Shown here in pieces: positions 5,841 to 40,501 of a stretch of 64,000 bases of DNA. The notes below the pieces were generated by a model. That model searched no databases, was not told where the DNA came from, and saw only the letters and a list, made by a program, of their open reading frames with translations. Every line of letters starts with the position of its first letter. Position 1 is the stretch's first letter. The translations under genes were made by a program, and so were the position numbers. The DNA is from Blastocladiella emersonii ATCC 22665 (Eukaryota; Fungi; Blastocladiomycota): assembly GCA_025594325.1 (NCBI GenBank), contig JANHCV010000013.1, positions 620,001 to 684,000 of the forward strand, in the 5' to 3' direction.

Positions 5841-7240
5841 ATGGAACTCGATGAAAACTTTATGCAACGTGGACCGCCGCCGCCGCTGGCCGCTGTGTCG
5901 CGGTTTGCGGCGTGGCGTGCCTGACGTCCGCGCCACGCGCAAGGAGACGCACGACGCGCTGCTCGGCGCGACTGCGCCGCGGCCGACTCGCGCGCCGCGT
6001 GCACGGCATGGGCGTGGCACAGCTCGAGTACCTGCTCCGTATCGGGACCGCCGCGCTGACTGGTCGGCGAGCCCGACGGGACCCGCCGCGCTGCTACGCT
6101 CGTGGACGAGCACGCCGCTCTCGCTCTGCCCGACTGCCACGCGCGCCGGGTGCCGGTCCGGCTCGTCAAGCACCTCGGCTTTCTCGCCGTCGCGCGGTGG
6201 CGCTTCGATCTCCTTGAACCCGTGCTCGCGGCGGCGGATTCGACGTCCGCGCTTTCATTACATTCCTCGACCACACGGACCTATCCCGCCTCTTCGTCAG
6301 CCAGATCGCCGTAATGCGACAAGACGCTTGACCTGTACGTCCTGGCTGGCTTCTAGACAAAAACGGATGGATGTGGACCGCCGGCTCGCTTGTTGAACCG
6401 CTCGTCTTCTATGGGCCGACCGTGTTCCTGAACGCACTGGCCGAGTCCGAGGACAGCGTCCGCCAAGGGTCGACGCGGAACGAGTTTGGCGCGATTGAAG
6501 CTTCCATCATCGGTTGGAACACCCCGCAATCCGCACCTCGTGCCCGACCAACTCGCGCGTATCTGGTATCGCGTGGATCACCTCGGTCGCCATCAGACCC
6601 GCAGCGACACGCGGGCATGCGTTGGAGTCTGCGGTCCAAGACGAACACCACGTCGTCCTTGCTTGGCACCATGCTGCTTCACACCGTCCTCGACCGCTCG
6701 CCACGCACTTTCACGGCACCGGGCATCACGATCTGCCACACCTGCCCGCTCACGCACCAAGCCGCCTGGCACGACGCGTACGACGCGCTCATCAGCCCAT
6801 CCCTGGCGCCGATCCAGCACGTCGCCGTTTACAGGTGCTGCTGTTCGGGCGACGATGTCTGGGTCCGGCGGCGCGTCGTGGTCGGGTTGGGTGGCGGCGG
6901 CTTCGCCTTTCTTGACAACACGGCAAATGCTTTTTGCTGCACTTCTGAACTGCCGATCCACCACACCCTCGCGTCGGTTACCCGCGCCGACTCGCACTGG
7001 GCGCACGGGTTAGCCGACGCGCGGGATCCGCATCTGGAGGAGCTGTACAGCACGGTGCCCACGGTCCCGATCCCAACCGTCGTCGACCAGGTGGCGGGAC
7101 GGAAGGAAAAGTTGAACGGCGCCCTTGTGGCCGAAGTCGCGCGGCTCCCTGAGATCCCGCCCACGGCCGAGTCCCAGCGCGAACTCGAGAAGATGATGCA
7201 CCAGCTCGAGCAGGGGGAGTGCGTGTGGATGAATGAATAG
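5841..7240 (+). pseudogene. FBL1: decayed copy of the F-box-like family (frameshifts and internal deletions)
   Basis: Family motifs lie in several frames: VKHLGFLAVARW, WLLDKNGW, YGPTVFLNAL, SGIAWITSVA, LLGTMLLHTVLDRSP..ICHTCPLTHQAAW, AFCC. The start MELDE is shared with FBL2. The segment between 'DQLARIWY' and 'IAWIT' is deleted relative to FBL2. Confidence 0.75.
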
Positions 7241-7481
7241 AGCTGTCCTTGCGCGTTGAAATCCGAGGTCTGCTTGCCTACACCGAATCGATTACGGAGC
7301 TTCCACTTGTCGCAGTCCCTCCCGAGTCGACATCGGGCAAATCTCATGTCTCCTCGCGCGGCGCGAGGACTCCCTTGTCGCGATTTCGAGGTGCTTCGTG
7401 GCGAGTGATGGCGAGCGGACCGTACGCAGCGTATCGTGGAACCCTTTGAACGAGGTGAGCGGTGGTCCAGCTTCCAACCGT

Positions 7482-7517
7482 GAAACGCGTCGCGATATCA
7501 TGTGAGCGGCCGCGTGA
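7482..7517 (+). promoter_or_regulatory. Composite ACGCGTCG-N5-TCATGTG motif upstream of FBL2
   Basis: gaaACGCGTCGcgataTCATGTGagcggccgCGTGA, about 115 nt before the ATG. Confidence 0.7.
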
Positions 7518-7619
7518 TCGCGCACCCCTGCATGCACGGACGGGCCATCAGTCGGGCCATCCGCTCTTGCCCCCTCTCCGCCAACCGCTCAGCGCTACAC
7601 GCATACACGCATACACGCA

Positions 7620-9890
7620 ATGGAACTCGATGAAACCTCCGCGCAACATCCAGCGGCGCTGGCCGCGGTACCGGAGCGGCCCTTGCTGCCGCCTCGCGCA
7701 CCTTGTCCACCATCGCCAACGACCGACTCGTCCGTGGCGTGTGGTCGGTGCGCTTGCTCTGGGACCTGCTTCGCTCGGACCACGGTGTCGGTGAGCGGAC
7801 GGCCGCGCCCGCCGTGCTTAAAGAGTACAATTTTATCCTGGTGCCGCATGCGGCACCAGGAGCCGCTGCTACCAGTGGCTGGGGCTCGTTCCGAGCAGAC
7901 GCCGGTGCACGAGTTGCTGCTTTCCGCATTCGCGTCGTACGCATGCGCCGACCGGCTCGCGGGGCTCGTGCGGGGGTTGGATTCGAGCCAGGTCGCGGAC
8001 ATGCTTCGTGTGGCGCCCAGCAAGCGGCAGGTGTACTCGCTTTGGAGCGCCCCGCTGACACTGTACCCGCTCGTCCTGTTCTCGGCGGCGAAAGCGGGCC
8101 AGCTTGCGCTCTTCCGCTTGGCGCTGTCGGTGATTGCGGAGCACTGCCCGGTACTGCTCCAGGCCACGCTGACCCTCGACGAGTGGGAGGCGAAGGACTT
8201 CCACCTGTACTCGCCCAAGCCCGAGCAACACGCGCGGAAACGGGGGCCTGCCGTGAAACGTTACGAAGTCAATGCGAAGCAGCTCCCGCTTCGGATGATC
8301 GAGTACCTCGGCTCCCTGGCCATCGCGCAGTGGCAGTTTGGCATTCATTCTCAAAATTGTGGTCGACATGACGTCGACGGACTTGGACGCGCTGACGGCG
8401 TTCCTATGCCATCCGGGTATCTCGCACAGCATCGACTACCAACTCGGCGTCCTGCGAACGATAGCCGAGTACGAGACTGTTGACTGGCTCATCGCGAGCG
8501 GCGAGACTCGGCCGGTCGGCTCGCTTCTCGAGTCGCTCCTTGCTCGCGGGCCCGACATGTTCTTGCGCGCCATGGCGAAACACAAGCCTTACATCGTCCC
8601 GGGCTTGAAGGAAGCCGAGCTTGCGGCGATCGAAACGCACATCATGAGCTAGATCGTGGGCCAGCAGCGCATCACGCACGACCAGCTCGCGCAGATGTTT
8701 GCGCACGGATTCGTTCGCCTGCGCTCTCCGTTTTAAGCCAAGTTCATGATATGGGGTGTCGAGCATGACGATGCTGAACTGCTTGATGTGATCCGCGCTC
8801 ACCTTGACCAAGAGCGGTGGACTGACGCGATCGTGAAGGGTACGCAAGCTCGCGTCATCACTGATGGGTACCACTTTTTAATCACGCACAAACTGCGTCC
8901 GCATTATGTAGCCTTCCGCGACCTTCGCAGCGACGGAGTTCTCTCGCTTGCACGCTCCGCCACAATGGTCTTTGACTCTTCAGTACCGCACCTGCTCGTC
9001 CGTCTCGCCCCCGACTCGGGCGTCGAGGCTCTCCACGACCAGTTCCGCGACGCTCTGCTCTTACCCTACTCGCCCTCGGGAGCGCCTATTTCGCCCGGCG
9101 ACGCCCTCGCTTGGTTCGTCAGTCGTGACCTGATCGCCGACCCGATCGACGTCTTCGCGATCACGACCAAGACGCTTTCCGCAAACCAAACAAACAATCT
9201 GGCTTCCGCGCGGAGCGGCATCGCGTGGATCACGACGGTCGCGCTTGGTTCCTCGGAGACGCGAGGCCGCGCGCTCGAGCTTGGCACCGAGACAAACACC
9301 GCGCCATACTTGCTCGGCGCCATGCTGTTCAGCGCCGTCCTCGACCGCTCGCCGTGCACTTGGACGGCTCCGGGTCTCACGCTCTGCCGCGATTGCTCGA
9401 TTACGCACCAGGCCGTGTGGCGCGACGCGCTTGACGCGCTGGTTGACCGCTTCCCGACGGCTTTGCGTGATATTGACGCGAATTCTGCGAGGCCCAGGAC
9501 GCGGGCAAGGTCCGCCGGTGCGTAGCGGCCGGCTTGTGCAGCGCGTTCAACTGCACCTCTACAAACGCTTGCTGCGCTTCCAGCAGCGTGCCGCCGATGG
9601 AGCACCTCCTCGCGTCGTTTGCGCGCATCGACCCGCAGTGGGCTCGAAGCTTTGTTGATGTGGCGGCGCCAAGTCCTCCTCCCGTGCACAACGTACTTGA
9701 CGACACGACATCACCGCTAGCCCCCGCGCATCTCATCAACGCTCTGCTCGATCGCCTTGCGTCCTTGGATATTGGCGTGAGCGACGGAACCATGGCCGAA
9801 TTCGTTCAGATTATTCAGATGCAGCCACCGGTTTTTACGGTTCAGGATTGCCAGCAGTTGAATGAGATGCTCGACCAGTTGGCAATTTGA
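7620..9890 (+). pseudogene. FBL2: F-box-like family pseudogene (several frameshifts, two nonsense codons)
   Basis: Family motifs LLLSAFASYACADRL, LRMIEYLGSLA, LARGP, RWTDAIVKG|intron 8840-8911|AFRDL, TAPYLLGAML, CRDCSITHQAVW, NACCASS. Frameshifts near 7680, 7860, 8340 and 9477. TAG at 8650 and TAA at 8734. Confidence 0.8.
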
Positions 9891-10145: not shown

Positions 10146-10181
10146 GAGACGCGTCGGGATATCATGTGGGCAGTCGCGTGA
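10146..10181 (+). promoter_or_regulatory. Composite motif upstream of FBL3
   Basis: gagACGCGTCGggataTCATGTGggcagtcgCGTGA. Confidence 0.7.
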
Positions 10182-10251: not shown

Positions 10252-12565
10252 ATGCAACTGGAAACCATGAAACACTCTATGCAACGTAAAGATCCACCGG
10301 AGCTTGGGCTGGGCAACGTGCCGCCCGAGCTCCTCGCGCAAATTCTTAAGCTGACTTATGTGCGATGCCGGATTCCCGCGGCTTCGAGCCAACTCGCCTC
10401 GGCCGTTCGCGATCCGACCACTCTCATTATCTGGGTGTTTCCTTGCTTCTTTCGGCTCTCTCGCGCTCCGGCCAGACCGGCGGCGCGGAACTTCACCACC
10501 AACACGCCCCAACACGTTTCCAAGCGCGCCGCCCACGGTCATGCGCAGCCGTCCGCTTCCTATTTTGACTTGTATTCACCCGACAGGGCGAAACCGCAGC
10601 GGGCGGCATTGCTCCTTTCGTTTGCTTCGTGCTTGTCGGGCCAACGGATGGTCTCATTTACTTCGACTAAGTCAACTTCTCAGCTCGCATCCCACCTCGT
10701 TCAATGCGGGCCTCGAGTAAGAAGCAGGCTGAGCATGACCGCTACTTTGCGCGAACCGCTTGAGGCGTTCCTTTTGGCCCTGTTTGAGGCTGCTGACGAT
10801 GTCTCGCACGCTGCTACGCTCAAGTCCATGATTGACGATGTTGTACGTGATACAGCCCGGCTTTTTGAAGTATCGCTGGCGTGGTCAGAGTGGACTTTGT
10901 ATTACCCAACGCGTTGGGATGCGTACGTACCATTTGTCAATCGATTGGCGCCATCAACGCGGCTTCGGCTCATCGATTATCTCGGTGCTCTTGCCATGCT
11001 CTCAAGGAACTGCAAGCTTTTGGACATAATTTGCGGGGTTGGCCTCGATTTGGCGCCGCTCGTCGAATTCGCCTCACTTCCGGCAGTCGCCACCAAGCTC
11101 ATGGATCGCATCACAAGGCTCAACAGTTCTGGGACTCCTTCTCCCCAGACGGCGGGCGCCGCACGCGTCCTCACTTGGCTTCTCGATAACGGCTGGAACA
11201 ACACATCACGGATGATTTTATCGACAGCGATTCTTGGTCTCGGCCCTGCTGCGTTTGTGAATGCGCTGAACAGCCACACCGAAATGGTCCTTCAGGCGCA
11301 CGGCATTGACGCAAAGAAACGGCTCTTCGAATCCACTCTCAAGTGACTTGCCAACCAACTCGTCTCAGCGCCGCAACTCGCAGCTATGCTTGATCTTGGC
11401 GCTCTTGAGCTATCTCTGGAGGATTGGGGCAGCTTTGTTGTCACCTCGTTCCTCAGCGCGAAAGTTGAGCTTTCAACTCACGACTGCTGGGGAATCTACT
11501 TTGCACGTGAACGCGTCAACGATTCGTCATGGAAAGAAGTCCTTGAACACGATACCGTTCCTTTCCCATCCGAGTTTGACAACGCACAAAACTGACTCAG
11601 TGCACCATGCACCAACTCGCTCAGCTTTTAGGCTCTCACTTAACACTAAAGCACCCCACAGTGTCGTTTGGTTTGCTCGGGAGACCTGCAGCATCGATAT
11701 GACATCCCGCTTCGCTCAAATTCTTGCAGCCTACAAATACCCGTCCGTTGGACTGACGAACTTGTTGAGCTGGGACCTTGTCGCTAACCCGCTTGATGTC
11801 CTTGCAATCGCGGCTCGCGCAATCGAGTTCCTTGGATCCAGTATGACAGACTTGTCCCTGACCTTCAATTGGACGGCTTGGATTGTCACCATCACGCTTG
11901 CCGCACCTACGACGCGAGAGAGTGCTCTCAACGTCTTGGCCGAAACAGGCACTGCGCCGTATTTTCTTGGCGCCATGTTTTGGGCCGGCATCTCAGACCT
12001 TGAGCCGTGCTTGGGTGACGCGCCCGAGATCCAAATTTGCCACGAGTGTCCTCTCATCTACCAGGAACCGTGGCGCGTCGCGCTTACCGCGCTTCTTGCG
12101 CGCTTCCCAGTTGCTTTCGCGGAGTACGATGATCACTTCTACCACAAATCAGGCGCCGACGCACAATTGTTAGCCAAGCGTCTCTCCGAATGCAGAGCGG
12201 CGGAACGAACCAACGGGTGCTGTGCCAAGTCGACCAATGATGGCCCGCTCGCAAATATGCTCGGCCAGATGTCTCGCGCAGACCCGCGGTCCATGTTCCT
12301 GTTCGTCAAACGAAGCCCACACGGTGCACGGACCCCGCTCTTGGCTTCCTTTCCCTCGGGTATCTTTGATGGCGTTGCCACTGCGTCTGAACTCGCGCGC
12401 CTCTCTTTCACTGGCGAAGGCCGCGCCGCCAAAAAACGCCATGCCCAAGCCGCTGGCGGAGACAAACCTGTGATCGACCAACTGAAGCGCCTGGCACCTG
12501 TCGCGACGAGCTGTCCAAACTTCAAGTGCGCCCTTGAAGTCATTGAGCAGAGGCTAGCCAATTAA
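10252..12565 (+). pseudogene. FBL3: F-box-like family copy, full length but with an in-frame TGA (11344) and a mutated splice donor (GT>AT at 11552)
   Basis: N-terminus LGLGNVPPELLAQILKL...LASAVRDP..W. Reading continues in frame after the TGA (LANQLVSAPQLAAMLDLGALE). Acceptor tcag at 11624 gives AFRLSL as in paralogs. C-module has CHECPLIYQEPW, GCCAKS, RADPRSMF, LKRLAPVA. Confidence 0.8.
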
Positions 12566-13912: not shown

Positions 13913-16181
13913 ATGAAGCAAAAACGAACAAACAACTCCATGCAACGTGTTCGCCAAGCACCCCTTGGGCTTGGAGGGCTGCCGTTGTCAGCCCTCGAGC
14001 TTGTCATGCAGCTTAGCCTTGCCCGCCACATCGTCCCGGCTGCTTCGAGCCTTCTGACGGCGGCTGTTCGAGAGCCGCGAAATCTCTTCGTTTGGATGCT
14101 TCCCGACGTCTTTCCTGACCTTAAACTTTACAGGACGAGGCCTCCTGGCCAGGCGAAACTTCTCCCATCCATTGCCGCACAACTCCCGGTCCAACCGCCG
14201 TCGCTCAAGCGGGATGTCTTGCTCTGGTCCTTTGCGTCATGCTTTAGCGGCGATCGACTCGTGGCGTTTGTTTCTGACAAGTCCACCGAGCAGCTATCAG
14301 CGTTTGTGGCTTCGCGAGGCTACAATACAGCAACCAGCCTTCGGACGTTCCGCACCCTTCGAGAGCCGCTTGTGCCGTTCTTGCGAGTTCTTCTCGAAGC
14401 CGTCGCAACAGCGCGTTCAACACTCGTTGAAGTCTTAACCAACGACTTGCTCAATAATGCCCCTGGGATTCTTGATCTTACGCTCCCCTTTCGCAAGTGG
14501 CTGGCCTTACTCTCAAAGGCCGCTAAAAGCACCCTATTTCTGTCGGAACACAATCTCGACGCGTTTGGTGGGTCCTCCTCGCTTGATCTGGCCAACTGCC
14601 TCTGTACCTTTGCGATTCTTCACATGGACGATGAGCTCTTACGACCAATTCTCAAGCTTGGTCGCAGCTTGAGCCCGGCAGTAACTTTCACTTCACTCAA
14701 CCCAACGGCGACTGCGGTTCGTCTCAGGATTGCACACACCGGGTTTCCTGACAAGAGCGATGAAATCGAGGCTGTGGATCGCCGGGCCAGCGCAGCTCGT
14801 GTACTCGATTGGCTCCTTGCCCACAACTGGACCATCGACTTGCCTTCAAACATCTCCTTGATAAATAGAGTCGCTTTCCTCGGACCCAAGGTTTTATCGC
14901 GCAACATCATCCAATATCCAGAACAGATGCTTGAAAATCACACCGGCCGGCAAAAACAGGCACTTTTTCTGAACATTCGGAAGATGCTCTTGCTTGGGTT
15001 TGTTTCCGAGTCCGAGCTTGCGGCACTTGTCGATCACGGAGCATTTGAGATGTCAGTTCAGAATTGGGCCGATGTCATTGTCACTTCATTCTTCAACTCG
15101 ATCCACAACATGGAGCTGGATTGGGGAGCGAGTTTTGCGCGTGCTCGGGTCGAAACCGCGTTGTGGGATGACGTCCTCGTTGAAGGTACGGTCCGCGGAA
15201 GTTGCTTACTTGCGGCTCATTCTTTCTGACACTCACTGTGCGGTGCCCTCGCTAGCGTTTCGACTCTCGCATACGAATGCTGCTGTACAGAGCATGGTGA
15301 AGCTTGCTCGGCAAACCAGCGCGCGTGACATGATGCCTCGATTCGTAGAGATCCTCGCAGCCAGCATTAACGTCTCCAGCTCGCTTGTCAGCCTGCTTGA
15401 TTGGGATCTTATTGCGGATCTGCTTGATATCATGACGATCGTGTGCAGGACCATTGGCTTGCTTGGCGCCGAGACGGTCAACTTGAGTTCCGTCCCTCCG
15501 AAATGGACCTCATGGATCGCCGTTGTTACACTTGCTGCTCCTTCGACGCGCGCTCAGGCACTTGACGTCCTGGCCGCGACCAGCACAGCCCCGTATTTTC
15601 TTGGCGCTATGCTTTGGGCTGCCCTCGAAGACCACGAGCCGTGCACGGACTACGCGCCTGGGCTCGAAATCTGCGAGAAATGCCCGCTTTCGTACCAGCA
15701 ACCGTGGCGTGACGCACTTGGCGCACTCCTTGCCCGCTTTCCGACTGCTCTCAACGAGTACGACAACAAGTTTTTCCCAACAAAAAACCATGCCGCGGGC
15801 ATCCTTACTCGGTCCTTGGACGACGCTTCAAAGCACGAACTCAGCAACACATGCTGCGCCAAGTCCTCAGGCAGTGACAGCCCATTTGCCAACACTCTCG
15901 CTGCGATCGCTCGAGCCGACCCCCGCTCCATGTTTCAATTCTTGAAGCGGAACCGGGGAGTCGTAAACGGCTTAGTCGGCCTCCTGCCTGCGGCCATCTT
16001 TGATGGTGGTGTGGCCTCGATCTATGAGCTTGCCGAGCTCACGTTCACACGCGATGACCGAGCGAGCCTGATTTGTTCCCTCAAGCGCCTCGCGCCGGTC
16101 GCAACTAATGATTCTGCCTTTGATCACGCGTTGGCTGTGCTCGAGCGGCGCCTCAATGGTTCATTGTTTAATGCTGAGTGA
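13913..16181 (+). CDS. FBL4: intact F-box-like helical protein with Cys motif, predicted 732 aa (exons 13913-15185, 15256-16181)
   Basis: Two ORFs are joined in frame by a 70-nt gtacgg...gctag phase-1 intron (VEG|AFRLS). F-box-like LGLGGLPLSALELVMQL...VPAASSLLTAAVREPRNLFVW, plus CEKCPLSYQQPW and TCCAKS. Confidence 0.8.
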
Positions 16182-16361
16182 ACTGATACATATCAGCTCG
16201 CGGTTGCAAGCCGCTTGCAGACGCGGCGGACTCCCAAAATTAAATTGTTTGCTTTGGATATCGGCTTTTCTGTTGTTTGAATTTATATTAATATCATACT
16301 TGATGTAACGTTCAGAATGAAGGACGAACAAGGTCCCTCAGATGTCTCCGCTGTCTCTCAA

Positions 16362-16395
16362 AACACGCGACGGACATTCATGTGACCGAACGTGA
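16362..16395 (+). promoter_or_regulatory. Composite motif upstream of FBL5
   Basis: aacACGCGACGgacatTCATGTGaccgaaCGTGA. Confidence 0.7.
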
Positions 16396-16477
16396 CGCGC
16401 CACAGCGGCGATCGGGTGTCCCTTTGCGCCGCGAGCGGCTTCACACCAGCTCCCACCGCGCAGGCGAATGTAATCGA

Positions 16478-18791
16478 ATGAAGAAGAAAACGAAAGCCAA
16501 CTTGTTGCAACGTGCAGGCCCAGTGGGACTCACGCTCGAGCGCCTACCCTCGCCGCTTCTTGAACGAGTCGTCCAAATTTGCCAGCCGCGGCCCGCCGTT
16601 CCGCTTGCATCGGTCGCGCTTGCGACGGCCATCCGTGAACCGCGAGCCCTTATCGCATGGGTTCACCCGCTTCTGTTTCCGCCTGCTCGCGCACCTCAGC
16701 CCTATGGCCGTCGGGCTGCCCATTTCGCCGTATCAACGGCAGCGTCGCTCAAGGATGTACGTACCCGAACAGTTCATACCGTGATCGATGTATTCGCTAA
16801 ACAGCGGTCCAACGGTGTAGCCGTCACCGAGACGGGACGCCCTACTTCGTTCCTACGTTGCCTGCATCGGCGGTGACCGGCTTGCAGAGTTTGTTGCAGG
16901 CAAGTCCACCGAACAGCTCTCGAATTGCATTCTTGCGAATGACGGCGCGTTGCCGCTCAAAATAACCGTGACGCGCCTCATGCGAGAACCCCTCGTTCCT
17001 TTCCTTCGCGTCCTGATTGAGGCGGTCGTGACCTCTCGTGCCTCGCTTCTCAAGTACCTGATCGCCGACGTGTCAAGCAAATTGCCGCAGGTGCTAACTA
17101 TCACGCACAAGTGGCTTGAATGGCGTACTATTCAGGGTGTACAACTCACGGACGACGATCGCGGGTCAATGGGAGAGTTCCCTCTGCGCTTTATCGACTT
17201 TCTTGGCGTTTACGCCGTCATCTCGCTCGAAGACGACCTTCTTCAGGCCGTGCTGGCTTCTGGTCTTGATACGCCATCGCTCACCAAGTGCGCCTCATTC
17301 AAGCCCCCTGTAGGAGCCATTATGAACCATGCGCAGAGCCGTCGAACCCCGGGCAAACTGGCCGACACGAGCGCAGTTGCTGCGCGCAAGGCGAGCGCGG
17401 CTCGAGTCTTCAACTGGCTCCTTGACCACGGCTGGACCAACTCGTGGCAAGAATCTCGTTCGCTTGCCACGACGATTTCTGCGCTCGGACCAACGCCTCT
17501 TGCGCGCGCTTTGAAAAATCACCCGCAGCAAAGCCTCGCGGGACAGGACGCCCAACAGAAACGGTACCTTTTCGCCGAAACACGCGTCTGGCTTACCTTT
17601 TCCCGGATTACTGAGGCCGAATTTGCTACGTTTCTTGACGCTGGCGCACTCGAGCTTACTGTCGAGGACTGGAGTGATGTGGTCGTTTCCTCGTTTTTAA
17701 CGCCGAATCGCGATCATGCTGTCCCGGACTGGGGCGCCGATTTTGCTTACGAACGGGTTGATGAAGAGCTTTGGGACGAAGTTCTCGGCCATGGTTCGTA
17801 CTGACGGGATTTGTTGGATTGACAAGGACGCGAGTCTGACCCATGGCCCGATTTGCGACGTGTAGCCTTCAAAAACTCGCTCGAAAATTCTGCCATTCAT
17901 GGCGTCGTGTGGTTGGCCCGGGATACCAGCTCGCATGACTTTGTCCCGCAGTTCGCCGAAACGCTCGCTCTCAGCGAGAAAGTCGCCGACTCGCTTGAAA
18001 GGCTGCTTAACTGGGATCTCTTTGCGGATACGCTCGACGTTCTCTCAATCACGGCGCAAACGGTCGGAATGCTTGGCACGGAGGGCGCAGACCTAAGCTC
18101 GCTCTCCAAGTGGACGTCTTGGATTGTGGTCGTGGCGCTCGCGGCTTCCGCCACCCGAGATCGCGCGCTCGAAATAATTGCCAGCACGGGTACGGCACCG
18201 TACTTTCTCGGTGCCATGCTTCACACCAGCATTTCGGACCGTGAGCCGTGCTTGGACGTGGCGCCCGAGCTCGAGTTTTGCGACAAGTGTCCGCTTGTGT
18301 ACCAGCAACCGTGGCGCGACGCGCTCGCTGTTCTCTTATCGCGGTTCCCGGCCGCTTTGTCGGCATACGACAACCGCTTTTACCAGAAGTCGGCGAAGGT
18401 GACGTCCGAGCATTGGTCCCGCGTGCAGCAGGCGGCGCGGCTCGAGCTCTCAAATAATTGCTGCGCCAAGTCGGCCCCGAATGGGCCGTTGCGTGCCTTC
18501 CTTGATACACTTGCGCGAGCTGACCCGCAGTCCATGTTCCAGCTCATCAAGCGCCACCCGGGAGCTGCTCGCTACATTACGAGCTACCTGCCCGAGGCCA
18601 TCTTTGACGGTGTAGCCTCCGCTTACGATCTTGCCCAGCTCACTTACATACATTCGGATCGGGACTCCGTCATCCGCGACTTGAAGCGGCTTGCTCCCGT
18701 CGCGACTTCGGACCCGGGCTTTACTCAAGCACTGAACGTTGTTGAGCATCGCCTCAAGAATAAGTTGACCCGAACGAATGACCGATTCTAG
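16478..18791 (+). CDS. FBL5: intact F-box-like family protein, predicted 725 aa (exons 16478-16756, 16821-17793, 17866-18791)
   Basis: Introns gtacgt...gtgtag (64 nt) and gttcgt...gtgtag (72 nt) restore one frame (SLKD|PSPRRDALLRSYVACIGGDRL and GHG|AFKNSLE). All family motifs are present. The last exon is 926 nt, as in FBL4. Confidence 0.8.
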
Positions 18792-18887
18792 AGTATTTTT
18801 CTTTTGTGTTCGCTACCAACCTCGATACACACATTCTCAACGTTTTTGTCTCCCAACTCGCGAACTCGCGACAAATCGACTGAGCCC

Positions 18888-18924
18888 AAACGCACGTCTG
18901 GATTTCATGTGAGCGGCGTTGTGA
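18888..18924 (+). promoter_or_regulatory. Orphan, partly degenerate copy of the composite motif
   Basis: aaacGCACGTCTggattTCATGTGagcggcgtTGTGA. No intact gene follows. Confidence 0.45.
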
Positions 18925-19601
18925 CGTCCGACCTGATAGAGCGCAATCTCAGTTAGCTGTCAAGGAAGGGCTCATGACGATGGAGCTCTCAACTCTGAAA
19001 GAAGAGCAAGGTGATGGGCGACTCGCACGCCACGGGCTGTGTTGAACACGCGTTGTTGGTGCGTGGGCTGAGCGAGGTGGCCTCCAGCTGCAGGTTGTGG
19101 ATTCATCGAGTTCAATCACCGTTTGGAAGGTTGAATCTTGCGGTAGTGACAGATTTCAGAGATCAATCCCCTGCGGCTGTTTCGAGGCGTGCCAATTAAA
19201 AGCGAAGCAATGATTCCGGGCCAGGAAGCATTTCGATGTTTTGTATTTCTGAGCACGTTTGCTTCGTATTCGCGCTTATTTCTTCCATCTCGGCCTCGTG
19301 GAAGTGCGGATATCTCGAAGTGATGGCCGACAGGCTTGAGGCTGCTCCACACGTGATGGGTGTCGGCCAAGCTTTACGGGTCTCTGGCCATTATCGCGGT
19401 GATTATTGTGCAAGCAAAGTGACGTAAACTCCGATCAGAAACACAGTGAGAAGTCGATCTCCCCTCGTTCTCGTCTGTCTGAGCATGTTCGTCCATAGAC
19501 GCGACCGAGTACGGTCGATCGGCGTGGAGATTTTCAGCACGCGATTTTCGATCGAGTAGGAGCCAAGCGCTGCTTCACGGCGAGCGTCACTGCGCCTGTG
19601 G

Positions 19602-19637
19602 GAGACGCGTCGAGTTATCATGTGACCCGCGGCGTGA
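19602..19637 (+). promoter_or_regulatory. Composite motif upstream of FBL6
   Basis: gagACGCGTCGagttaTCATGTGacccgcggCGTGA. Confidence 0.7.
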
Positions 19638-19728
19638 TGCGCGCGGGCTTGCCGCTCGCACCTTTTCGCTCGCTCCGCGCCTGGCTCCACCCTCTCCCTC
19701 GCAAGCAGCACCCATGCAGCAGTAACCA

Positions 19729-22108: not shown

Positions 22109-22185
22109 TTTTGGATCACCACCAACCTGTGGTTGTAACATCTAGCGTATTACATGTATTCTTCTTCATCAACTCACCCAAACGC

Positions 22186-23837: not shown

Positions 23838-23858
23838 AACGTGATATCGCGACACGTC
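23838..23858 (-). promoter_or_regulatory. Variant composite motif (ACGTGTCG-cgata-TCACGTT) about 550 nt upstream of APD1
   Basis: Minus strand ggACGTGTCGcgataTCACGTTtt, nearly identical to the motif at 25964-25984. Confidence 0.45.
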
Positions 23859-25851: not shown

Positions 25852-25963
25852 GGAGAGAGATACATGCAGTTGATGCGGGAAACGAGGAGCGAGAGCGGAG
25901 GCCTAGCGGTGACCGGTGCGGTGCACGGTGCGGTGGCTTCCGCTCCACCGAGCCGCACCGCAC

Positions 25964-25984
25964 AACGTGATATCGCGACGCGTC
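25964..25984 (-). promoter_or_regulatory. Variant composite motif upstream of the zinc-finger gene
   Basis: gACGCGTCGcgataTCACGTTg, about 113 nt before the ATG. It shares ACGCGTCGCGATATCA with the FBL2 motif. Confidence 0.6.
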
Positions 25985-28992: not shown

Positions 28993-29769
28993 GGCCCGGA
29001 CGAGAACGCACCGTCAAACTCACACGGCGTCTTGGTGGCGTGCTAGTTGCGCAAGGCCCGCACAACTTACCCCGTGGAAGCCCTTAACGTCTTGTCGTAC
29101 GCCCTTGTTGCGACGTCCTTCAAGCACACGTTTTCGCCGTAGCTTGACGCCGTTCAAATCACCTTGGTCCTCTTCGCCAACGTCTTGTTCAACGACTCCC
29201 ACAAGGACGACGGCCTGAAAGTTGTTCGCTTGCGGGGTGCTGCACCTCACTTGCTCAGCATCATGATCGCCGGGCTTCTTTCCAGCCATCGCTTTGAAGC
29301 AGCAAACCATATCTCTTGCCACCACCTGTGCCTCGATTGCCCTTCGCCGTACCAGCAGGGCTGGCGCGACGCGCTCTGCAGCTTTCTTGCGTTTGAGCCG
29401 TTAAGCTCCGATCTCTCACCCGTACCGCGCGTGATCCCATCGTACTTGGTCCATGTCAAGGACGAGTTGGTCGACTCGATTGCCTTTGAGGCGGCCAACG
29501 AATGCTGCGCGCCCAAGACTGCTACCGCGACGTCGCAGTCCTCGATCGCCTTCCTCATCACGACGCTTGCCGCTCATGACCCGCGGCTCGTTGCTGAGCT
29601 TCTTACTAATCTGTCTCCCGTCCCGGTCGCCTTCACAAAGTGTCTTTCAGACGGCGCGCTCGACTCAATTCTCACATCTGAAGACGTGCTGGCACTCTCG
29701 GCAGCGAATGGCATAACGACTGAGCAGAGATCGGAGCTCGCACGATTTGCACCGTCGCACGCGCAGTAG
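28990..29769 (+). pseudogene. FBL7: C-terminal-module-only remnant of the F-box-like family
   Basis: HGVLVAC*LRK, VEALNVLS, APHLLSIM, LCLDCPSPYQQGWRDAL, NECCAPK, LAAHDPR, DGAL. In-frame TAG at 29044 and 29140. No N-module or promoter motif. Confidence 0.7.
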
Positions 29770-31078
29770 GCTGCACGACGTCACTGTGTCGCTCGATATT
29801 TGATAATTTTTGCATGTTCGTTTGATTACTGAGTCTCTCTTTTGTGGGGCTCAGAGTCGCTCTTTGCGGTATCTCGGCAAGATAGCGCGGGAAGCGCGGC
29901 CGTTAGTCGTCGTCGTGACGCTCGACCTCGCGACGGCGACGGGCGCCGTGGTGAGCGCACCGCTTGGCCGACCGCTGCAGTTCCTGTTCCGCGAGCTCGA
30001 CACGGCCATGATGAGGTAGCTGATCGTCATGAAGCGTTTCGCTCGGATTCACGCCCATCGCTGACCCATTCGCGCGCGGCACCACGACCGCCGCGCCGAT
30101 CTGTCGCCTCTCCACGCGTCGGTCCCGTCGTTAACATGGTTCATGATCAGCTCGAGAGATCGCTTGTAGTTTCATGCGCGCCGTGCGCGGTGGCGGGCTT
30201 CCCGTGCTGCGTCCAACAACGTGGACCGCGATTGCTGTGATACCAGTGACGTGCGGCGACATGTACGAGCTGGACGACGACGGCCCGACCGCGATAAGGA
30301 CTCGTTATGTGCCGGATCTGGGCCGGAGGCGCGTCCACAGTGATTGGTATTACCAAGTGTGCCCTCGCCGTTCAAGTTCGCGAACGGGCGCATGTGTGCT
30401 TGATGTTGGGACTGATCTTGTGAAAGTCTGGTTTCATGAGCGCCTGGGTGCATTCATGACCGTGTTACGACGCGGGAGAAGAAGCGCGTCGCGGCCAAGC
30501 GGCCGAAAGTTTGAGCGCCGCGCCGCTCCCCTAGCGCTTTCTCTCGCCAGCTGCCCCTAATCCATGAAACGTTGCCACTTCCTTGAATCACTCTATGCAA
30601 CGCACTTGAGGAACCAGTAAACTGCCGAATTTACGTTACGCCGACCTTCCAGCTGAACTTGCCATCACCGTCCTGTTGTTCGTTGAGCCGGCCTGCGCCG
30701 TCCCCGTCGCCTTGCGCACTCAGTACTTGACCGCCAAAGCTGATCTGGTTTGCCCAGCATGAACTTTTCGCTGTTTTGCCCGCATTACGCTGGAATACCG
30801 GGAAAGCTTCCACGAGCGTGAGGATCAAGTGTCAAAGGTTAACGTGGGCCTTACCGAGGCTAAACAACGTGGATGGACGGAATTGATCTAAATATTGACG
30901 CATGTAATCGCTGTGAATACGCGCAGGGGATGTCGAAAGACAGGCCCCATAGCTCTCGCGTTGCGCCACTTGGTGATCGCGAGCGGGGTGGCAGGGCAAA
31001 CACGTGAGTGGCTTGACCGAGTGCGGGACGAAATTGTCTCGCGGTGCGTCTCCATGATCCCTCCCCTCGCTCGTTGCA

Positions 31079-34000
31079 ATGAAGCCAAAGAAGAAAACGA
31101 AAAAGCCTGCGACTAGCGGCAATGCATCCAAACCTGCTATTATGTCCAAGTCGCTGAACGCCGCGGTCCCGGCGCTTCTCACATGCCGCACGGACGAGCG
31201 CGGTGACCGAATCGAAGGATTCCGCCCGTTCCGTCACCGCCCGCCGCGTGACCTGTTCATGTACCATGATTCTCGCACCCGCGCCGACCTGCACGCTCTC
31301 CTGTGCGGGTGCGGCGACTTGGCTGAAGTTGCGCGTACCGTGTCCGAAGCGGCAGTCAAGGGCGGGACGGCGACGCTCTCGTTCACGCTCAACGACTGGC
31401 AGCCCGAAGTCCTCGCGCGGAACTTGCTGATCTTGCATGCCATTGCTCACGTTCCGTCGGTCGAGATCGACTCGTCAACCCTCACGCGCTGGGTCGGTCA
31501 GCTCTGGTACTCGCACTTTCTCGATCCCGACGCCCTCGAATTTTGGAAAGCCCAGCTGCGTGCTTGTCTCGATACGGATTGGCTCAACGTCATGGCTGAG
31601 TCGCCCATTCGCGTCTTGAACGACTCAACCCTGGTCGAGCTCCGCCGTTGCTGGCGCGCCTGGCTTGACTTGGGCTGGTCCGTCGAGGCTTTCCGAGTCA
31701 AGCGCGATAATTTCAACACCAAACATTTTGATATCAACGACTATGGGTCTCCCGACTGCACGTATTACGCGTGGGCATCGTCCTTGGCCATGGAGCGGCT
31801 GCACGCACAGTATCGTTACGTGGTCCAGGCCGTTGCGTCCGCGCGCCTCTCGTGTAACCTCGAGCGCCTTGGTGAGTACGGTGTTTGTACGCAGTCGGGG
31901 CATGACCGTTCTGGTCGCAAACTCGTTGTCAATCCGACGATGCTCCTCCTCGCCAGCGACGGTGCCGCCTACTTTGCCGCCTACAGCGATCCGCTCCCTG
32001 GTGCATGCTTCGACTTTCTCGTCGAGGAAGGCCTCCCCGAGCCGCACATGATTTCCCGCTTGGATGATTGGGTCCAGTCGCTTTCGAAGGCCATGCGCGG
32101 TGACGGCTTCCGAGTTCAAGTCAGTTTCATTCACGGCCACGCGGTTGCGGTCATGGAGGAGCTCATCGCCGATTCTACTATGCGCTTCGATATCGTGGAC
32201 ACGAATACGCTCATGACGACCTGCGGACTTCTCACCATCCTTGTTCACGGTTCACCGCTGCTTCGCAACAATGACGACTTTTCGGAGCGCGCCCGCCTGC
32301 TGACCTACTCCATGGAGGACGTGGAGGTGAAGACGGGATCACGGCTTGCGTACCTTCGTTTCTTGTCCGGCCTCAAGCCCGGAGCTTTCCCGGCTCTGTT
32401 TGGCGTAACTCTTGCGGAAAGGTTGTCAGACGACGACTCAGCAACGTGGTCTCAGCCCTTCTCGTGGGCATTTGACCCAGGAGTTGATCGCACCGTCCGC
32501 TACCTCACTTTCACCAAGCTTCCGCATCCCACAGTGCCGACTTCGCTGGACGCTTCGCCTTACCTGCGCAATGCGTTGACCGATTGCGCGGCCAATTTGT
32601 TGTCAACCGATGGCCCAGGCACGTTATCCGAGCGCTTATCAACTGTCTCCCAGACTGACAACTAACCACGACTGCGCGTGTATGTGCTCTAGTGACGAGA
32701 ACCGTTTTCATCAAACTTCTCGCGTTCGCTTTCGCGTCGAAACGCCTTGTCTGGGAGGGCAGCTTGGCAGATTCCGTCGGCCCTTACTGGCAATTGTTGC
32801 CCGCTGTTGAATTCTTAACTGGCGTTGTCTTGTCCGCTGGTAAGCCGACAAACAAGGCCGACACCTTGGATCCCCTTGAGCTCTCAGTTGGTTTGCCCTA
32901 CTATGGAATTGCAGGGATCAATGGGGTGAGCAACAATTACCTTGTCGAGTTGACCGTTCCCGCGGACAAACAGTTGGCTGTTGGATCGCCCTCCCTCTTG
33001 TTGGAAATTGCTCGCCCGAGGCGTGGTCCGGTTGGTTTCGCCGCCCTTCGCGTCAACTCGACAATCCAGGACGATTCTCCGTCCGTGCGCGTCATAGGAC
33101 TTGTTCCTCGCTTTCTGGTGGACGCCGCCCCGGCCGGTACCACGGTCGGCGTGCACTCTCAGGGCCTCGACGAGTCGAGCAAATTCATCAACGGCAAGTA
33201 TGTACCGCTCTTCGCTGCCCAAGTTACGCTTGTCAAAGTGGAGTCGAACACGCAGCTTTTGCGCGCGCTTGACCAGTCGCTTCACTCACCGGCTCCTTCT
33301 GGCCCGTCCGATCCTTGCAACTGGCCGCTTTCAGTCGAGCACGTAATTGACAATGCGACTGTGGTCGAGCTTGTGCTCAAGTTTAAACCTGGCGCGAAGA
33401 CCGTGTTTGAGCTCGTTCCAAAGTCTGATTCTTGGTCGGAGCGCGGCGCCGTGACCCTTTTCGTCGATGGACAGCGCCAAACGATGCGCGTTTCGTCTCC
33501 CGTGTCCGTTACCGACATGCATATCTCTCGCGAGCAGGGCCGCGTGACGCTTGTCCTCAAGCGCATCATGAACGTGGGCCGCAGCATGGGGCTTCCGCCT
33601 TCGCTTCCTCGCATTGGCCGCTGCATGCCGGTTGCTCCTCATGGCGAACTCTTTCAGCGCTTGATGCGAACGGCGATGTTTTTGACGCAGGACATTATCG
33701 AAACGAGTGGCTCGATTCGACCAGCGGAACGCTCATCGAACAACAGCCTCATTGATCGTCTGCTCGAGCAGCATGCTGAGAACATGACCGCCAAAGTGCT
33801 CTCAACGATGATTGCTGATCTCACAGTCCAATTGTTCGCCGCTTCTGACACTAAACGGCATCTTGTTGCGATGCGGAATCCCGAGGGCGAGGTTGTTGCG
33901 ATGATCTTTCTCAACCGCTCCGTGCTTATCCCCTCCGCTGGGCCCGGCTTTATCCCGACTCCCGCTCTCGAGTGTACTGTCGCGCTAGCGGGAGAAAGGG

Positions 34001-34326
34001 ATGATCTTTACGGCGCGGGCGACCCTCCCCTTGCTGATCGCGGGCGGCTGCTTTCGAGCTGCGGAAACGCGATCCTCGAGCAGTGGCAGAAACCCAAGCG
34101 CGAGCTTTCGTCTTCGTACTCGCTTCCGATGTGCCAGATCCCGTTCTACGCGTTGCCAAACGCCGTCGTGCCCGATTCGGACTCGCAACTCGATGCCGAC
34201 ACGTACGCGGTACTCCGCCCGATTCTCAAGCGAGTTCTGGTTCTCCCTGTGAGCTGGATCGAGTCCGAGAGAACCCAAAGCCAGCTGGCTCGGCGCTACA
34301 TGATGATGATGGGGGCGTCTGGCTGA
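31079..34326 (+). CDS. DUF4470-domain protein, predicted ~1057 aa (exons 31079-32618, 32693-34326)
   Basis: LHALLCGCGDLAEVART...LSFTLNDWQPEVLARNLLILH matches DUF4470 (LL.GCGD.R...T.ND..P.ILARN). The later FDIVDTNTLM...L..LL segment fits fungal members. The two ORFs join in phase through a 74-nt GC-AG intron (cag|gcacgt...actaac...tctag). Confidence 0.7.
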
Positions 34327-36059: not shown

Positions 36060-36437
36060 TCACCTCGTGCCCTTTGGCATCAGTCGTGCCGCGTTCAGCC
36101 CGTACGATTTGCACGCGACGCGGACTTAGTGGCGAAACCCCCACTCGGCGGTGGTCGCAGCGGTCACGGCAACGACCTTAGCCAGCCAGTCGCGTGTCGC
36201 ATCGACCGTCACTTCCCCATCCCTAGCCTTGAGCAGAACCCTCATCGACCGAGCTTTACCCACATCGGGGAGCGCTTTCCGTCAAGTGCCCCGCGCGGGA
36301 GCATCCGCAAGATGTGCCGCGGGGGGTCGGTCGGGATGTCGATAACCCCGTCGAGTACGAGCTTGGGAGCTGCGCGGTACAGCTGTTGGATGTTCCACGC
36401 CGTGTCCGATCCGGGTCCGCTGGTGCCGCTCGCCAAT
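36060..36437 (-). pseudogene. FBL8: C-terminal remnant paralogous to FBL9
   Basis: ELASGTSGPGSDTAWNIQQLYRAAPKLVLD...LPRGALDG...W, then (frameshifted) DATRDWLAKVVAV. Colinear with the FBL9 C-terminus. Confidence 0.8.
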
Positions 36438-37270
36438 TCAGCGCACTCCCGCGTGCGGCGCGGAATTTTCACGGCGCACGCGCGAGTGCAGCCCAGCGGT
36501 GCGGAGCGAGCGAGCCGGCGAGGTCCAAGCGCGGCTGCTGAGTGGCAAACAGTTGTTGCTGGTAGTGGTTCCCAGAGCAGGCGAGCAACGCGTAGGTTGG
36601 TCGAATGAGGTCTGGGGAGCGATTGAGCTCAACAAGGTAGGCAGTGACTACACCAGAGAAATGAGACGGTCATGTTGTAAGTGCACGGTTCTGGTGAGCG
36701 ACATTCACGCGGCTGCATACGCGTCTCAAGCTGAACGAGCTGACGCTCATGAACTACGTTGGTCCTGGCAGTGAGACTCCCGGGCATTTGTCCCAGGCGC
36801 AGTCGCATCAAACCGTGACCGCCACCACCGAGTTGGCGAAGGTCGCGGCTTGCGGGAGCTGCGTGCTCCGCTCGGAAATCATGATGGACCTTCAGTACAC
36901 TCGTCGGCGAGCGGATCGAGCAGCGAAGGCATGGCCCATGGCGAATTAGGGTCGCCCGAGTATCGGCGCAGGTGGAGCAGACTGCTGCGGAGAGCCGCGT
37001 GGTGCCTGACACCTGGTTTTGGTGCTGTTACCGCCCAGTCAACGACGAGCTTGCGAGCCTCATGCGGCGCGACGGCAACTGGCCAAACACCGGACACTTC
37101 AAGTTTACACCAAACTTGGTCCACGACCTGCTTTAAGCCCACAAATCGCAATGCGTCAAGTCCCATATTCCATCCTCTCCTACATCTCGACAGCTCCATG
37201 GCGGGGTCGGCGGAGTGACCCAACGTGACGCGCCGGCCGCCCTTCAACCTGACGCGTCGCCCCCGACGCC
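36438..37270 (-). mobile_element. Left arm plus central hairpin of the foldback repeat (copy 6), replacing most of FBL8
   Basis: Colinear with 49620-50308 (+), with shared runs gcgcgtcacgttgggtcac..gccgaccccgccatggag, ctgctccacctgcgccgatactcg and gctctgggaaccactac. Hairpin at 36438-36494. Confidence 0.7.
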
Positions 37271-37402
37271 AGCCGCACCTTCTTCAGCGCGTTGAATCTC
37301 TCACGAGCACGAACGTCAGCGCGAGAGCGCACGGTGAGGAGCACGGTGGTAGTATGAGGCATGTGCGGGGGTATCAGACCGAGCGAACAGCAACAGGAGC
37401 GG

Positions 37403-37438
37403 TGACGCCACACGTCACATGATTGAACGTCGCGTCTC
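37403..37438 (-). promoter_or_regulatory. Composite motif of FBL8
   Basis: Minus strand gagACGCGACGttcaaTCATGTGacgtgtggCGTCA. Confidence 0.7.
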
Positions 37439-37945
37439 GCATTCGCGCTGGCCCGCGGCCGATGCACCTCAGTAAGCGTCTCCCGTCTCCCGTCTCCATG
37501 ATGCGTGCGCTTCGTGTTCTCACAGCCGGCACATCTTCCACACCTCGGCTCCGCAATTAAACGACTCCCCGCTTGCCAAACACCAAATCTTGGCTCACGA
37601 GCTGGGCAGAACGCTCGTGTTCTGTGGACTGAAACTTTTGATTCACTAGAAGGGAACCTCTCCTCTGGCATTCGGCGTGTACGGGGTAGCGTGAAGCTAT
37701 GTTGCGCGCAGGAGGTATCCAAGGTTTTTAAATGTGCGTCCTTGGCCCAAAGTGACGGTTAAAGAGCAACTTGGTGGCCACGGGCCGAACCTGTCGAAAA
37801 AGCGCGTCCTTAATGTCGCGCGTCGCAAAGTGCATGAAGCCTACCTCCGCCCCCGCGAGGTCGCGCGACATCAGCGCCGATCCGGAGCAACGACACACTC
37901 GCGTTCGCAGCATTGGACTCGAAAACCACTCGTTTATTCATCAAA

Positions 37946-40501
37946 TCACTCCGTCGCCAATGGCAACAGCTGCACCGCGTCCAGCCTGCAAGCTACGCAT
38001 TCGGCGCGAACCGCCTCGCGGAACTTGGGCTTGGCGGTCGCCACCGCGGCCACCGCAAACATTTCCGCGAGCCAGTCGCGGGCATCGTCCATGGCGACCT
38101 CGCCACGCTGCGCGCCTTTCAGAATGTCCATCACCTCGTCCAGGACCCACCCAGGCTGACGCAGCCCGTCAAACGCACCGCGCGGGAGTAGTCGCAAGGC
38201 GTGATGCGGAACGTCGAAGGGAAAGTCAAGGAACTCATCAAGTAGGAGCTTTGGAGCTGCGCGGTACAGCTGTTCAATGATCCACGCCGTGTCTGAGCCA
38301 GGCCCGCTGGTGCCGCTCGCGAGCTCAACACGTCGCAGTTTGTCGGCATCATGCAGCGCACTGTCCGAGAAAAGCAGATTGCGCGCCGCAACCGGGATCG
38401 ATTCGGGTAGGAGAGTGAAGCCCGGAATCTTTGTGAGCATCGCGTTGACGGCGTACTGCCACGGCGCCCACGCGGCGTTTGGGAGGTCACCCGGCGGGGC
38501 ATTGGGATCCGCAAGGCGAGTGCGCGGATGAAGTTGGGGTGAATCGGCAGCCTGGATGAGAGCATTCACAGCGGCGCTCTGAGGAAGCGATGCAAGATAC
38601 GCGTCCATCGTCCAGCACCCGCCCTTGCCTCGAGACTTGGGAAGTAGTAGCAGGTAAAAGTACCAGTGCGCGATTCGCATCGACTCGAGTGTGCGGGCGA
38701 GGCGTTTCCTGGTCGCTGCCGAGGTTCGCTGATCACACATTAGCGCGACGAGAAACGGAGCCGAGAACTCGGGTATTTGGTCCTCGACCTTCCACGCGCG
38801 AAGCTCTGGGGTGCGGCCGCGTGGGTGAAGGACGACGTGAGCATGATTGAAAGCGTCGAGAAACGCGATCAGGTCGAACATTGCGCCGGCCTGTTCGAGT
38901 GCAGCGAGAACAGCGCTGTTGAGCAGCGACTCCAATCTTACGCCCGTCTGCATGGCTGCGGCCAAGACCGTGGTGGTTTCCTGAAGCAGTTTTTCGGTAT
39001 CGCGATGGCCCGCAGACGGGGTTGATTGAACTTTGGCGAGTTTGTTGGTTCCGGTCACGATCGACATGACTAAGCGAGGAGGCAAGCGCTACGTCAGTGA
39101 GCGGAGGCCTATTGGGCTGCGGCGGACGCTCGTACCAGCTGGAAGCGCTGTTGTCAGCTCTTCATGCGAAAGCCGACGCGCCAACGGCAAGAAATCTGCG
39201 ACGGGTGTCCAAATCGCAAGGAAGAGGAAGCGCGCAATTTGGCCCATATTCATGAAGCGACGTTCAAAGATCTCGGTCAGGACCGCGCAGTGCTCGCCGA
39301 TATCGGCCATGGCAAGCAGCTCATCCAAGGCGTCATCGCGCCCGCCAAGAATGGCCGCTGCAAACCGTTTCGTTGGATGCTTAAGGTAGACCGGGCCCGG
39401 GGCGAAGCGGAGGATCATCTGCGCGATGCAATCGCTGCTAGCGCGGTCGAGGAGCTGAGTCGCGAGCGCCAGCACCTCGTCCGAGTCGGTCAGCTCGCCG
39501 TCCTCGCCGGTAAACCACGCGAGGGTCGAGATGACGAGGTCGGTTGGGAGCGACGCGTCAAACGCGCGCTCGATGAGAGGTTGGTACGCAAAGGATATGA
39601 AGTTTTCGCCTTGAATCCCATACCTGGGCTGCTCGAGAATCGCAAGCACCTCGGGGCGCCACCACTTGAGCGCAACGAGCGCGAGGTAGCCAAAGCAGCG
39701 CGGAGTCACCAAGGTGCCGGGGTCGGTAATCTCATAAGTCCACAAATCGGACCACGTATAGTCGCTGGAACGTGTCCGAGTCCGCCAGTCCGGGTCAAGG
39801 CACGCCAGCAAGCCAAAGGGGAGGTCGTGCGACGCTTCTGGAAGCTGTGCAAGCGCGTCCAGCACGAGCGTGAGTAGCTTGATTCGGCCCTGCGCGACGA
39901 AGACCATGGCGAGCTGGCGAAGCACAAAGAACTGTGGCACCAGCCGGAGCGCGGAATCCGAGAGACAGCGCCGACCGCGCTCTTCAAACTCCAATTCAAA
40001 CTGCATTGCCCAAGCGCGGACCTTCTTGTCTGGAAGCGAGTTGAGCGCTTTCGTCGAATACCGCACAATGAGACGAGTGACAGTCGGCGCGTCAAACACG
40101 TCAGCCGACGGAAGCCAACGCACGCGGTCAAGTTCACGGTGCAGGGCTGCAATCCTCTCGCGGCACGCGAGGTGGCACAGGTACGGCTCGAGCGGCATTT
40201 CCTCGCGCGGATTGATCGGGCCGCGAAGCTTGTGGCGGGCACAGGGGCACTCGCCCTTGCCACACGGGTGCAGCCGGCCCCAGCCGCACAGGTCGGGCCG
40301 TAACATGAAAGTAAACCGCCAAACCCACTGTGTGACCGAATCAGACGCAAGCTCGGCGAATCCACTCGTGGTAAGCGGGATGGCGACCTGGGGCACGGAG
40401 AGCTGCAGGACACGCCCGATCAACTCGGCGGGCAAGTCGGAGAATCGGGCGAGGCTAGCGTCCTCGGGCATATTGCAAGCAGTCATTTCATTGGATTCCA
40501 T
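37946..40501 (-). CDS. FBL9: intact, divergent F-box-like family protein lacking the Cys motif, predicted 829 aa (exons 40501-39136, 39069-37946)
   Basis: MESNEM...ARFSDLPAELIGRVLQL...LASDSVTQWVW (F-box-like), RCFGYLALVAL, APGPV. A 66-nt gtacga...cttag phase-1 intron sits at the family position (LPAG|VMS). C-module GVRLESLLN, APWQYAVNAMLTKIP, RAAPKLL, LPRGAFDG aligns with paralogs. Confidence 0.72.

Follow-up and report, generated by a model that had tools for sequence, protein, structure and literature searches.

What kind of gene family do the nine related copies FBL1 to FBL9, crowded into one part of a 64,000-nt stretch of the Blastocladiella emersonii ATCC 22665 genome, represent, and are their products receptors of a ubiquitin ligase, as a preliminary description of the locus proposed? 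The stretch, referred to here as the window, comprises positions 620001-684000 of contig C5 in an assembly of 32.65 Mb and 21 contigs, and belongs to an early-diverging, GC-rich fungus with intron-bearing genes. A bacterial origin was rejected on the strength of the 32.65 Mb and 21 contigs of the assembly and of GT-AG introns with CTGAC branch sites. F-box proteins (PF00646/PF12937) are the substrate receptors of Skp1-Cul1-F-box (SCF) ubiquitin ligases and have undergone large, fast-evolving expansions in nematodes and plants. We find that the window cluster samples, at one locus, a very large family of soluble proteins that is known to date from B. emersonii alone and that we hold with high confidence to be a real, selected and species-restricted gene family. 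The fuller statement, in which this helical-repeat family would carry a diverged F-box at its N-terminus and form a repertoire of SCF substrate receptors, we regard as evenly poised between true and false.

The copies were placed by tblastn with long open frames as queries and by a local hidden Markov model (HMM) built from seven intronless paralogs, and the arrangement described earlier, with FBL1-7 on the forward and FBL8-9 on the reverse strand, was recovered (Table 1). Where the reading frame seems broken between the N-terminal and C-terminal halves of these genes lies a conserved phase-1 intron, 64-72 nt long, whose donor is of the GTACG type (GTACGG in FBL4), whose branch site is CTGAC and whose acceptor is AG. 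Splicing in silico, applied solely for length, frame and stop counts while database searches used single exons, removes a single 70-nt intron from FBL4, a single 66-nt phase-1 intron at the family position from FBL9, and introns of 64 and 72 nt from FBL5, which is open throughout only after the second, 64-nt intron is spliced as well; all four introns are GT-AG and the three genes then contain no internal stop. A real break at the stop codon between the two FBL9 frames was considered and rejected, as the stop falls inside the 66-nt intron at the conserved position. With introns so treated, the division into three intact copies (FBL4, FBL5 and FBL9) and six broken ones holds: FBL3 carries one nonsense codon and FBL6 two, local sequence inspection revealing no intron signals around them, and FBL1, FBL2, FBL7 and FBL8 are fragments.

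The ordered series of motifs by which the copies were initially grouped is likewise real, being seen both in translations and in the C-terminal alignment, where it is largely invariant among FBL3-6. SFASC..GDRL, IDFLG, AARVL.WLL..W and LGP are read in exon-1 translations, and TAPYFLGA, CxxCP, CCAK, RADPxSMF, IFDG and LKRxAPxAT are invariant across the four aligned C-terminal exons of FBL3-6. The proteins are all-helical, about 730-830 aa long, and share one layout: an N-terminal box of about 45 residues with the consensus h..LPxELL..V.QLA.PR..V.AAS..L........W, a variable proline-rich linker, and a two-part helical-repeat body whose first half is weakly ankyrin-like and whose second half bears the TAPYFLGAML, CxxCP and CC motifs. 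Four cysteines of this C-terminal module (CxxC plus CC, at window positions 15640-15860 in FBL4) are invariant in FBL3-6, are present in distant paralogs such as L037 and are missing from FBL9; judged from the motif pattern, this tetrad may be a candidate metal-binding site.

The nine copies counted earlier are present in the window, together with a tenth relic, but as a "nine-member" family they are merely a local sample. A profile of the four C-terminal exons recovers at least 130 matches from six-frame translation of the genome, concentrated on contigs C5, C21, C17, C18, C4 and C6 and frequently adjoining, and a profile of the N-terminal box yields at least 150, with 150 scored of 534 candidates and all of those at E <= 4e-10. 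Beyond the genome, the C-terminal profile was compared with a library of 1.84 billion representative proteins and returned six weak matches (best E 2e-9), all of them B. emersonii hypothetical proteins; one of these, KAI9173268.1 from strain ATCC 22665, matches contig C21 at 99%. No window copy is among the six, since a window copy would score below 1e-150, and the window copies are thus missing from the public protein set of this model organism; annotation seems to have passed over most of the other members as well. In another of the six matches (P0003, 1425 aa), two members of the family are joined head to tail. Neither the window exons nor seven full-length paralogs match a Pfam family, a search of the ESM Atlas with FBL4 exon 2 gave no usable lead (best score 0.86, with low recognition), and among papers that connect Blastocladiella with F-box proteins we found none describing the family. 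A word-indexed protein search with FBL4 exon 1 and with a 59-row family alignment returned no match and is uninformative, the alignment query having missed even known B. emersonii members. The earlier claim of an unrecognised, lineage-specific family is therefore borne out by the absence of any Pfam domain and by library matches confined to six weak B. emersonii proteins.

Substitution patterns show that these are genes under constraint. FBL4 exon 1 differs from a diverged twin, located in the inverted array described below, by 0.44 synonymous (dS) and 0.17 nonsynonymous (dN) substitutions per site (dN/dS 0.39), and the C-terminal exons of FBL3-6 give dN/dS values of 0.23-0.42 at saturated dS. 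Purifying selection thus acts on the copies, more weakly than on housekeeping genes, and the three intact spliced frames together with the dN/dS range establish them as real protein-coding genes. At 0.59-0.77, their GC content at third codon positions (GC3) lies below that of the conserved neighbours listed in Table 1 (0.87-0.92), and in a composition profile the cluster forms a low-GC island; the lower GC3 fits either low expression or a different mutational regime.

The same composition enters into a different account of the family, according to which the copies are selfish or repeat-derived sequences, mobile-element cargo or decaying repeats with no host function, which could explain the absence of most of them from the published proteome. 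Besides GC3, this account can draw on the hundreds of copies, many of them broken, on the absence of the window copies from a protein library in which other B. emersonii proteins are present, and on a neighbouring DUF4470 gene that is likewise multi-copy. However, the genes lack flanking terminal inverted or long direct repeats, and a search of window positions 5000-42000 for inverted or terminal repeats of at least 60 nt recovered similarity internal to the paralogs and nothing else; neither the window exons nor the seven paralogs contain a transposase, integrase or reverse-transcriptase domain in Pfam. A transposable-element origin was rejected on these two grounds, and the check for a match to a known conserved domain or a transposable-element protein, called for in the preliminary description, gave no such Pfam match. 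Because the copies are 30-50% identical at the protein level, have dN/dS of 0.23-0.42 and share a conserved intron, they look like tandem arrays of a gene family that is old and under selection, and unlike the outcome of recent transposition, and we consider a selfish origin very unlikely.

The fold of the body was approached with an intronless paralog, L037 (730 aa), whose full-length structure was predicted with the 59-row alignment, the largest of family alignments that comprise about 35-59 sequences. The model has about 40 helices and no sheets (mean predicted local distance difference test score, pLDDT, 82.8; predicted template modelling score, pTM, 0.73). Foldseek returned generic solenoids only (E >= 1.3e-3, template modelling score, TM, 0.12-0.25), the best matches being importin-beta, SF3B1, beta-catenin/SYS-1 and PPR10. 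VIA-align against 48,161 chains gave Z values of up to 7.5; residues 85-370 aligned to numerous ankyrin-repeat chains at Z 5.5-6.8 and residues 337-613 to helical repeats of UTP type, every one of these values falling short of the noise level quoted for helical repeats. Membership in the ankyrin-repeat family failed on these sub-noise Z scores and on the lack of a Pfam Ank match in the window exons and seven paralogs. The predicted body is a helical-repeat domain without a nameable family: it resembles alpha-solenoids (HEAT, ARM, PPR-like) in being an all-helical repeat, and differs from each named one in the weakness of the structural matches, in showing no sequence similarity and in favouring no specific family.

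Whether the N-terminal box is an F-box was addressed through profiles of the box (alignments A2 and A5) and a control profile (A3) made from seven genuine B. emersonii F-boxes, each of which matches Pfam at 35-38 bits. The box consensus shares its layout with genuine F-boxes of this genome, as in the example LPQEILLKVLARLDAPSLAAAARVNIRFAHMVRDNVLW. Profile-profile alignment with hhalign places the box on the seven genuine F-boxes with a probability of 87% for A2 (E 4e-6) and 82% for A5 (E 1e-5), over 40-42 columns and with LP on LP, a likeness of moderate strength given a reference profile of only seven sequences. The hhalign score of 32.4 lies far above the scores of 100 column permutations (mean 7.8 +/- 2.1, maximum 14.9) and of the reversed profile (10.0), and HMM cross-matches between the box and genuine F-boxes are reciprocal, all at or below 22.6 bits. 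In the AlphaFold model of FBL5 exon 1a the box region forms three short helices (residues 25-34, 40-52 and 55-66, pLDDT 80-90). Potential partners are encoded as well: Skp1 homologs, recognised by the Skp1 dimerisation domain PF01466 above cut-off, lie at three loci (C15:2012492-2012704, C1:792512-792658 and C1:3199651-3199794).

Several observations weigh against descent from an F-box. The cut-offs of PF00646 and PF12937 are reached by no copy, whether in window exons, in the seven paralogs, among 36 N-terminal boxes or in genome-wide six-frame translation, which is one half of the outcome, the other being absent Skp1 binding, that the preliminary description had named in advance as counting against its proposal. 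Scanned directly, one of the 36 boxes matched, at an E of 0.025 that is below cut-off, and genuine F-box loci numbered about 20 and about 40 in the genome-wide scans, in which only one box of the family appeared, at E 0.83. Profiles A2 and A5 match no solved F-box chain at E <= 10, whereas the A3 control matches more than 50 solved F-box proteins, down to E 3.5e-11 and including FBXW7, Skp2 and beta-TrCP. A leucine occupies the position of the canonical tryptophan of the third helix (H3). The isolated box is modelled at a pTM of 0.33, with no match in Foldseek and a VIA-align Z of at most 3.2, so that no F-box fold is matched, and the full-length L037 model draws the box as one long helix (pLDDT 57-75).

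These points would suit an alternative reading that denies the box any F-box identity and the proteins any part in SCF ligases: the family would be one of orphan scaffolds built of ankyrin-like helical repeats, with a box that serves some other end, such as dimerisation, localisation or the capping of stacked repeats. Such a reading gains from the missing Pfam F-box match in every copy, from a box profile that finds no solved F-box protein though the control works, from the lack of a fold match and from the continuous helix in the full-length model; it is harder to reconcile with a match to genuine F-boxes that is in register and far above permuted nulls, and with an N-terminal site, a length of about 45 residues, an LPxE(L/I)L start, a tryptophan at about +37 and a linker before the repeat body, all of which fit F-box architecture in alignments A2, A3 and A5. 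We judge it possible, and short of probable. The F-box claim of the preliminary description thus stands in part, carried by the in-register hhalign alignments and the three predicted short helices, and falls short in the Pfam cut-offs, the solved F-box proteins and the fold comparison. On profile and model evidence, F-box descent of the box is plausible, at roughly an even chance or slightly better.

On the reading of function that we find most likely, the box, probably a strongly diverged F-box, would dock the protein on Skp1/Cul1, the helical-repeat body would provide a variable target-binding surface, and the family as a whole would constitute a lineage-specific repertoire of SCF substrate receptors with a ubiquitin-related function. 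The family resembles F-box proteins in its layout, where a box of about 45 residues beginning LPxE(L/I)L sits at the N-terminus and a linker separates it from a repeat body, and resembles the F-box expansions of nematodes and plants in its hundreds of paralogs, its tandem arrays and its many pseudogenes. Unlike F-box proteins, its copies remain below both Pfam cut-offs and have leucine for the H3 tryptophan; and unlike the leucine-rich repeat (LRR), WD40, Kelch or FBA bodies of those proteins, its body is an unnamed helical repeat with cysteine motifs. Legionella AnkB (PDB 5k35), which combines an F-box with ankyrin repeats and is matched by the control profile A3, offers a further comparison, given the weak alignment of residues 85-370 of the full-length L037 model to ankyrin chains at Z scores below the helical-repeat noise level; the family protein differs from AnkB in being far larger, in having a second, unrelated helical half and in lacking a Pfam Ank match.

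A working F-box would mean that hundreds of genes in the 33-Mb genome of this early-diverging fungus encode ubiquitin-ligase receptors all its own, whose binding domain has no name; gene-content estimates for B. emersonii, with 10,031 genes annotated, would shift, and the family would become a new system for the study of how receptor repertoires arise through duplication and recombination. Even without an F-box, a large, selected, species-restricted protein family to which no role is assigned deserves a place in the annotation. Extending the analogy with nematodes and plants, one could imagine several hundred Blastocladiella-only ubiquitin-ligase receptors, perhaps alongside other box-bearing repeat families, diversified by recombination for the recognition of non-self or parasites through an undescribed substrate-binding fold, a fungal analogue of the F-box 'immune' expansions; we regard this as a long shot. 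For the co-regulation, antiviral or anti-parasite defence, allorecognition and drive entertained in the preliminary description, the present analysis contains no supporting evidence.

How the family grows and decays is recorded in the window itself, where fast turnover, as previously suggested, shows in the pseudogenes and fragments and in an inverted duplicate of 97-100% identity. Decay takes several forms. FBL1 retains 154 nt at 77% identity to positions 9287-9440 in the DNA repeat comparison of the window, and the C-terminal profile recognises FBL2 in two pieces, at 8980-9480 and 9540-9656, that lie in different frames. FBL6 has lost 10 residues downstream of CxxCP in the C-terminal exon alignment, and FBL8 is recovered as a DNA repeat (D2) at 74% identity. 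The C-terminal half of the intact FBL9 is strongly divergent (E = 0.004 against the FBL3-6 profile) and lacks the cysteine motifs. In a FastTree phylogeny of the C-terminal module, FBL3-6 and a copy at C5:994 kb are grouped in one clade, with FBL2, FBL7 and FBL9 placed in other subfamilies; local tandem duplication alone therefore did not build the cluster.

A tract of about 14 kb that spans several of the copies recurs in inverted orientation about 100 kb away. Window positions 16368-18938 (2.6 kb) and 19682-23563 (3.9 kb) match C5:527-531 kb and C5:512-516 kb, respectively, in inverted orientation and at 100% identity, and positions 22001-29009 match C5:507096-514102 at 97%. The left edge of the tract, at about 14950, lies inside FBL4 exon 1, where identity falls from 100% to about 75%; to its left the twin stays in register as an open-frame paralog with 72% protein identity, so that the twin gene of FBL4 is a mosaic, its N-terminal part about 75% identical at the DNA level and its C-terminal part identical. 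To the right of the tract, FBL7 starts just past about 29009 and is 70% identical to the neighbour of the twin; beyond both edges the copies continue as paralogs of about 70-75% identity. Between FBL5' and FBL6', the twin contains about 11 kb of extra sequence. These observations fit two older arrays in inverted orientation, in which recombination or conversion between paralogs has recently made the central part uniform and so yielded the mosaic FBL4.

Stretches of 2.6 and 3.9 kb without a single difference from inverted C5:512-531 kb could also be the product of a mis-join or a collapsed haplotype, in which case part of the apparent recent turnover would be an artefact of the assembly. The published assembly of strain ATCC 22665 comprises 21 contigs, and duplicated contigs had to be purged from it (PMC9730499), which lends this some weight. 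Yet the tract ends inside FBL4 exon 1 and passes into an in-register open paralog, the twin holds the extra stretch, identity declines to 97% toward the right edge, and the edge features match recombination between real paralogous arrays. An artefact is possible and in our estimation unlikely; it fits less well than homogenised arrays, and the existence of the family is unaffected by it. The family as seen here grows and decays by tandem duplication, paralog recombination or conversion, nonsense mutation and truncation.

Table 1. Family copies, duplicated tract and conserved neighbours in the window (window coordinates)
Feature	Position	Strand	Description	Evidence
FBL1	6638-7072	+	C-terminal-module fragment, pseudogene relic, nearest FBL2	local HMM positions 576-710, E 6e-8
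FBL2	7679-9656	+	decayed, four pieces in differing frames, C-terminal end gone	HMM 7679-7792, 7980-8336, 8770-9474
FBL3	10252-12565	+	full length; conserved phase-1 intron 11557-11624; in-frame TGA at 11344	tblastn, HMM
FBL4 (whole gene)	13913-16181	+	intact, 732 aa	
FBL4 exon 1	13913-15185	+	open from ATG; N-terminal box ~13958-14158, then N-terminal helical half	HMM positions 1-443
FBL4 exon 2	15256-16181	+	C-terminal module: TAPYFLGAML, CxxCP, CCAKS, RADPRSMF, IFDG, LKRLAPVAT	alignment, HMM
FBL5	16478-18791	+	intact, 725 aa; exons 16478-16756 (exon 1a, N-terminal box), 16821-17793, 17866-18791	
FBL6	19729-22108	+	full length; conserved intron 21116-21179; in-frame TAA at 20026 and 20647	
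FBL7	29170-29760	+	5'-truncated C-terminal fragment, other subfamily	HMM positions 556-763, E 1e-37
Tenth trace	30610-30759	+	solitary N-terminal box relic; stop codon ends box	N-box HMM E 1.5e-5
FBL8	36063-36439	-	fragment resembling FBL9 C-terminus, frame change	tblastn, 44-74% identity to FBL9 residues 254-379
FBL9	37946-40501	-	intact, 829 aa; exons 40501-39136, 39069-37946; N-terminal box 40250-40453	
Duplicated tract	14950-29009		~14 kb, 97-100% identical to inverted copy at C5:507-531 kb, ~100 kb away (loci L009, L011, L014)	
APD1/Suc_Fer-like	22186-23703		conserved neighbour used for GC3	
PI-PLC-X-like	41216-42160		conserved neighbour used for GC3	
bHLH	46552-48672		conserved neighbour used for GC3	
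GH31	58360-62121		conserved neighbour used for GC3	

Elsewhere in the genome, pairs of family matches with equal scores occur at distant sites in direct or inverted orientation (C5:540-546 kb and 697-705 kb; C6:733-737 kb and 922-926 kb; C11:1959-1963 kb and 2053-2056 kb), which suggests further recent segmental duplications involving the family. The DUF4470 gene of the window (30957-33323, with open frames at 31079-32665 and 32692-34326) belongs to a second multi-copy family, with about 40 DNA matches of 68-84% identity on contigs C4, C5, C17, C1 and C6, the best of them 84% identical over 2.4 kb at C5:830399-832768.

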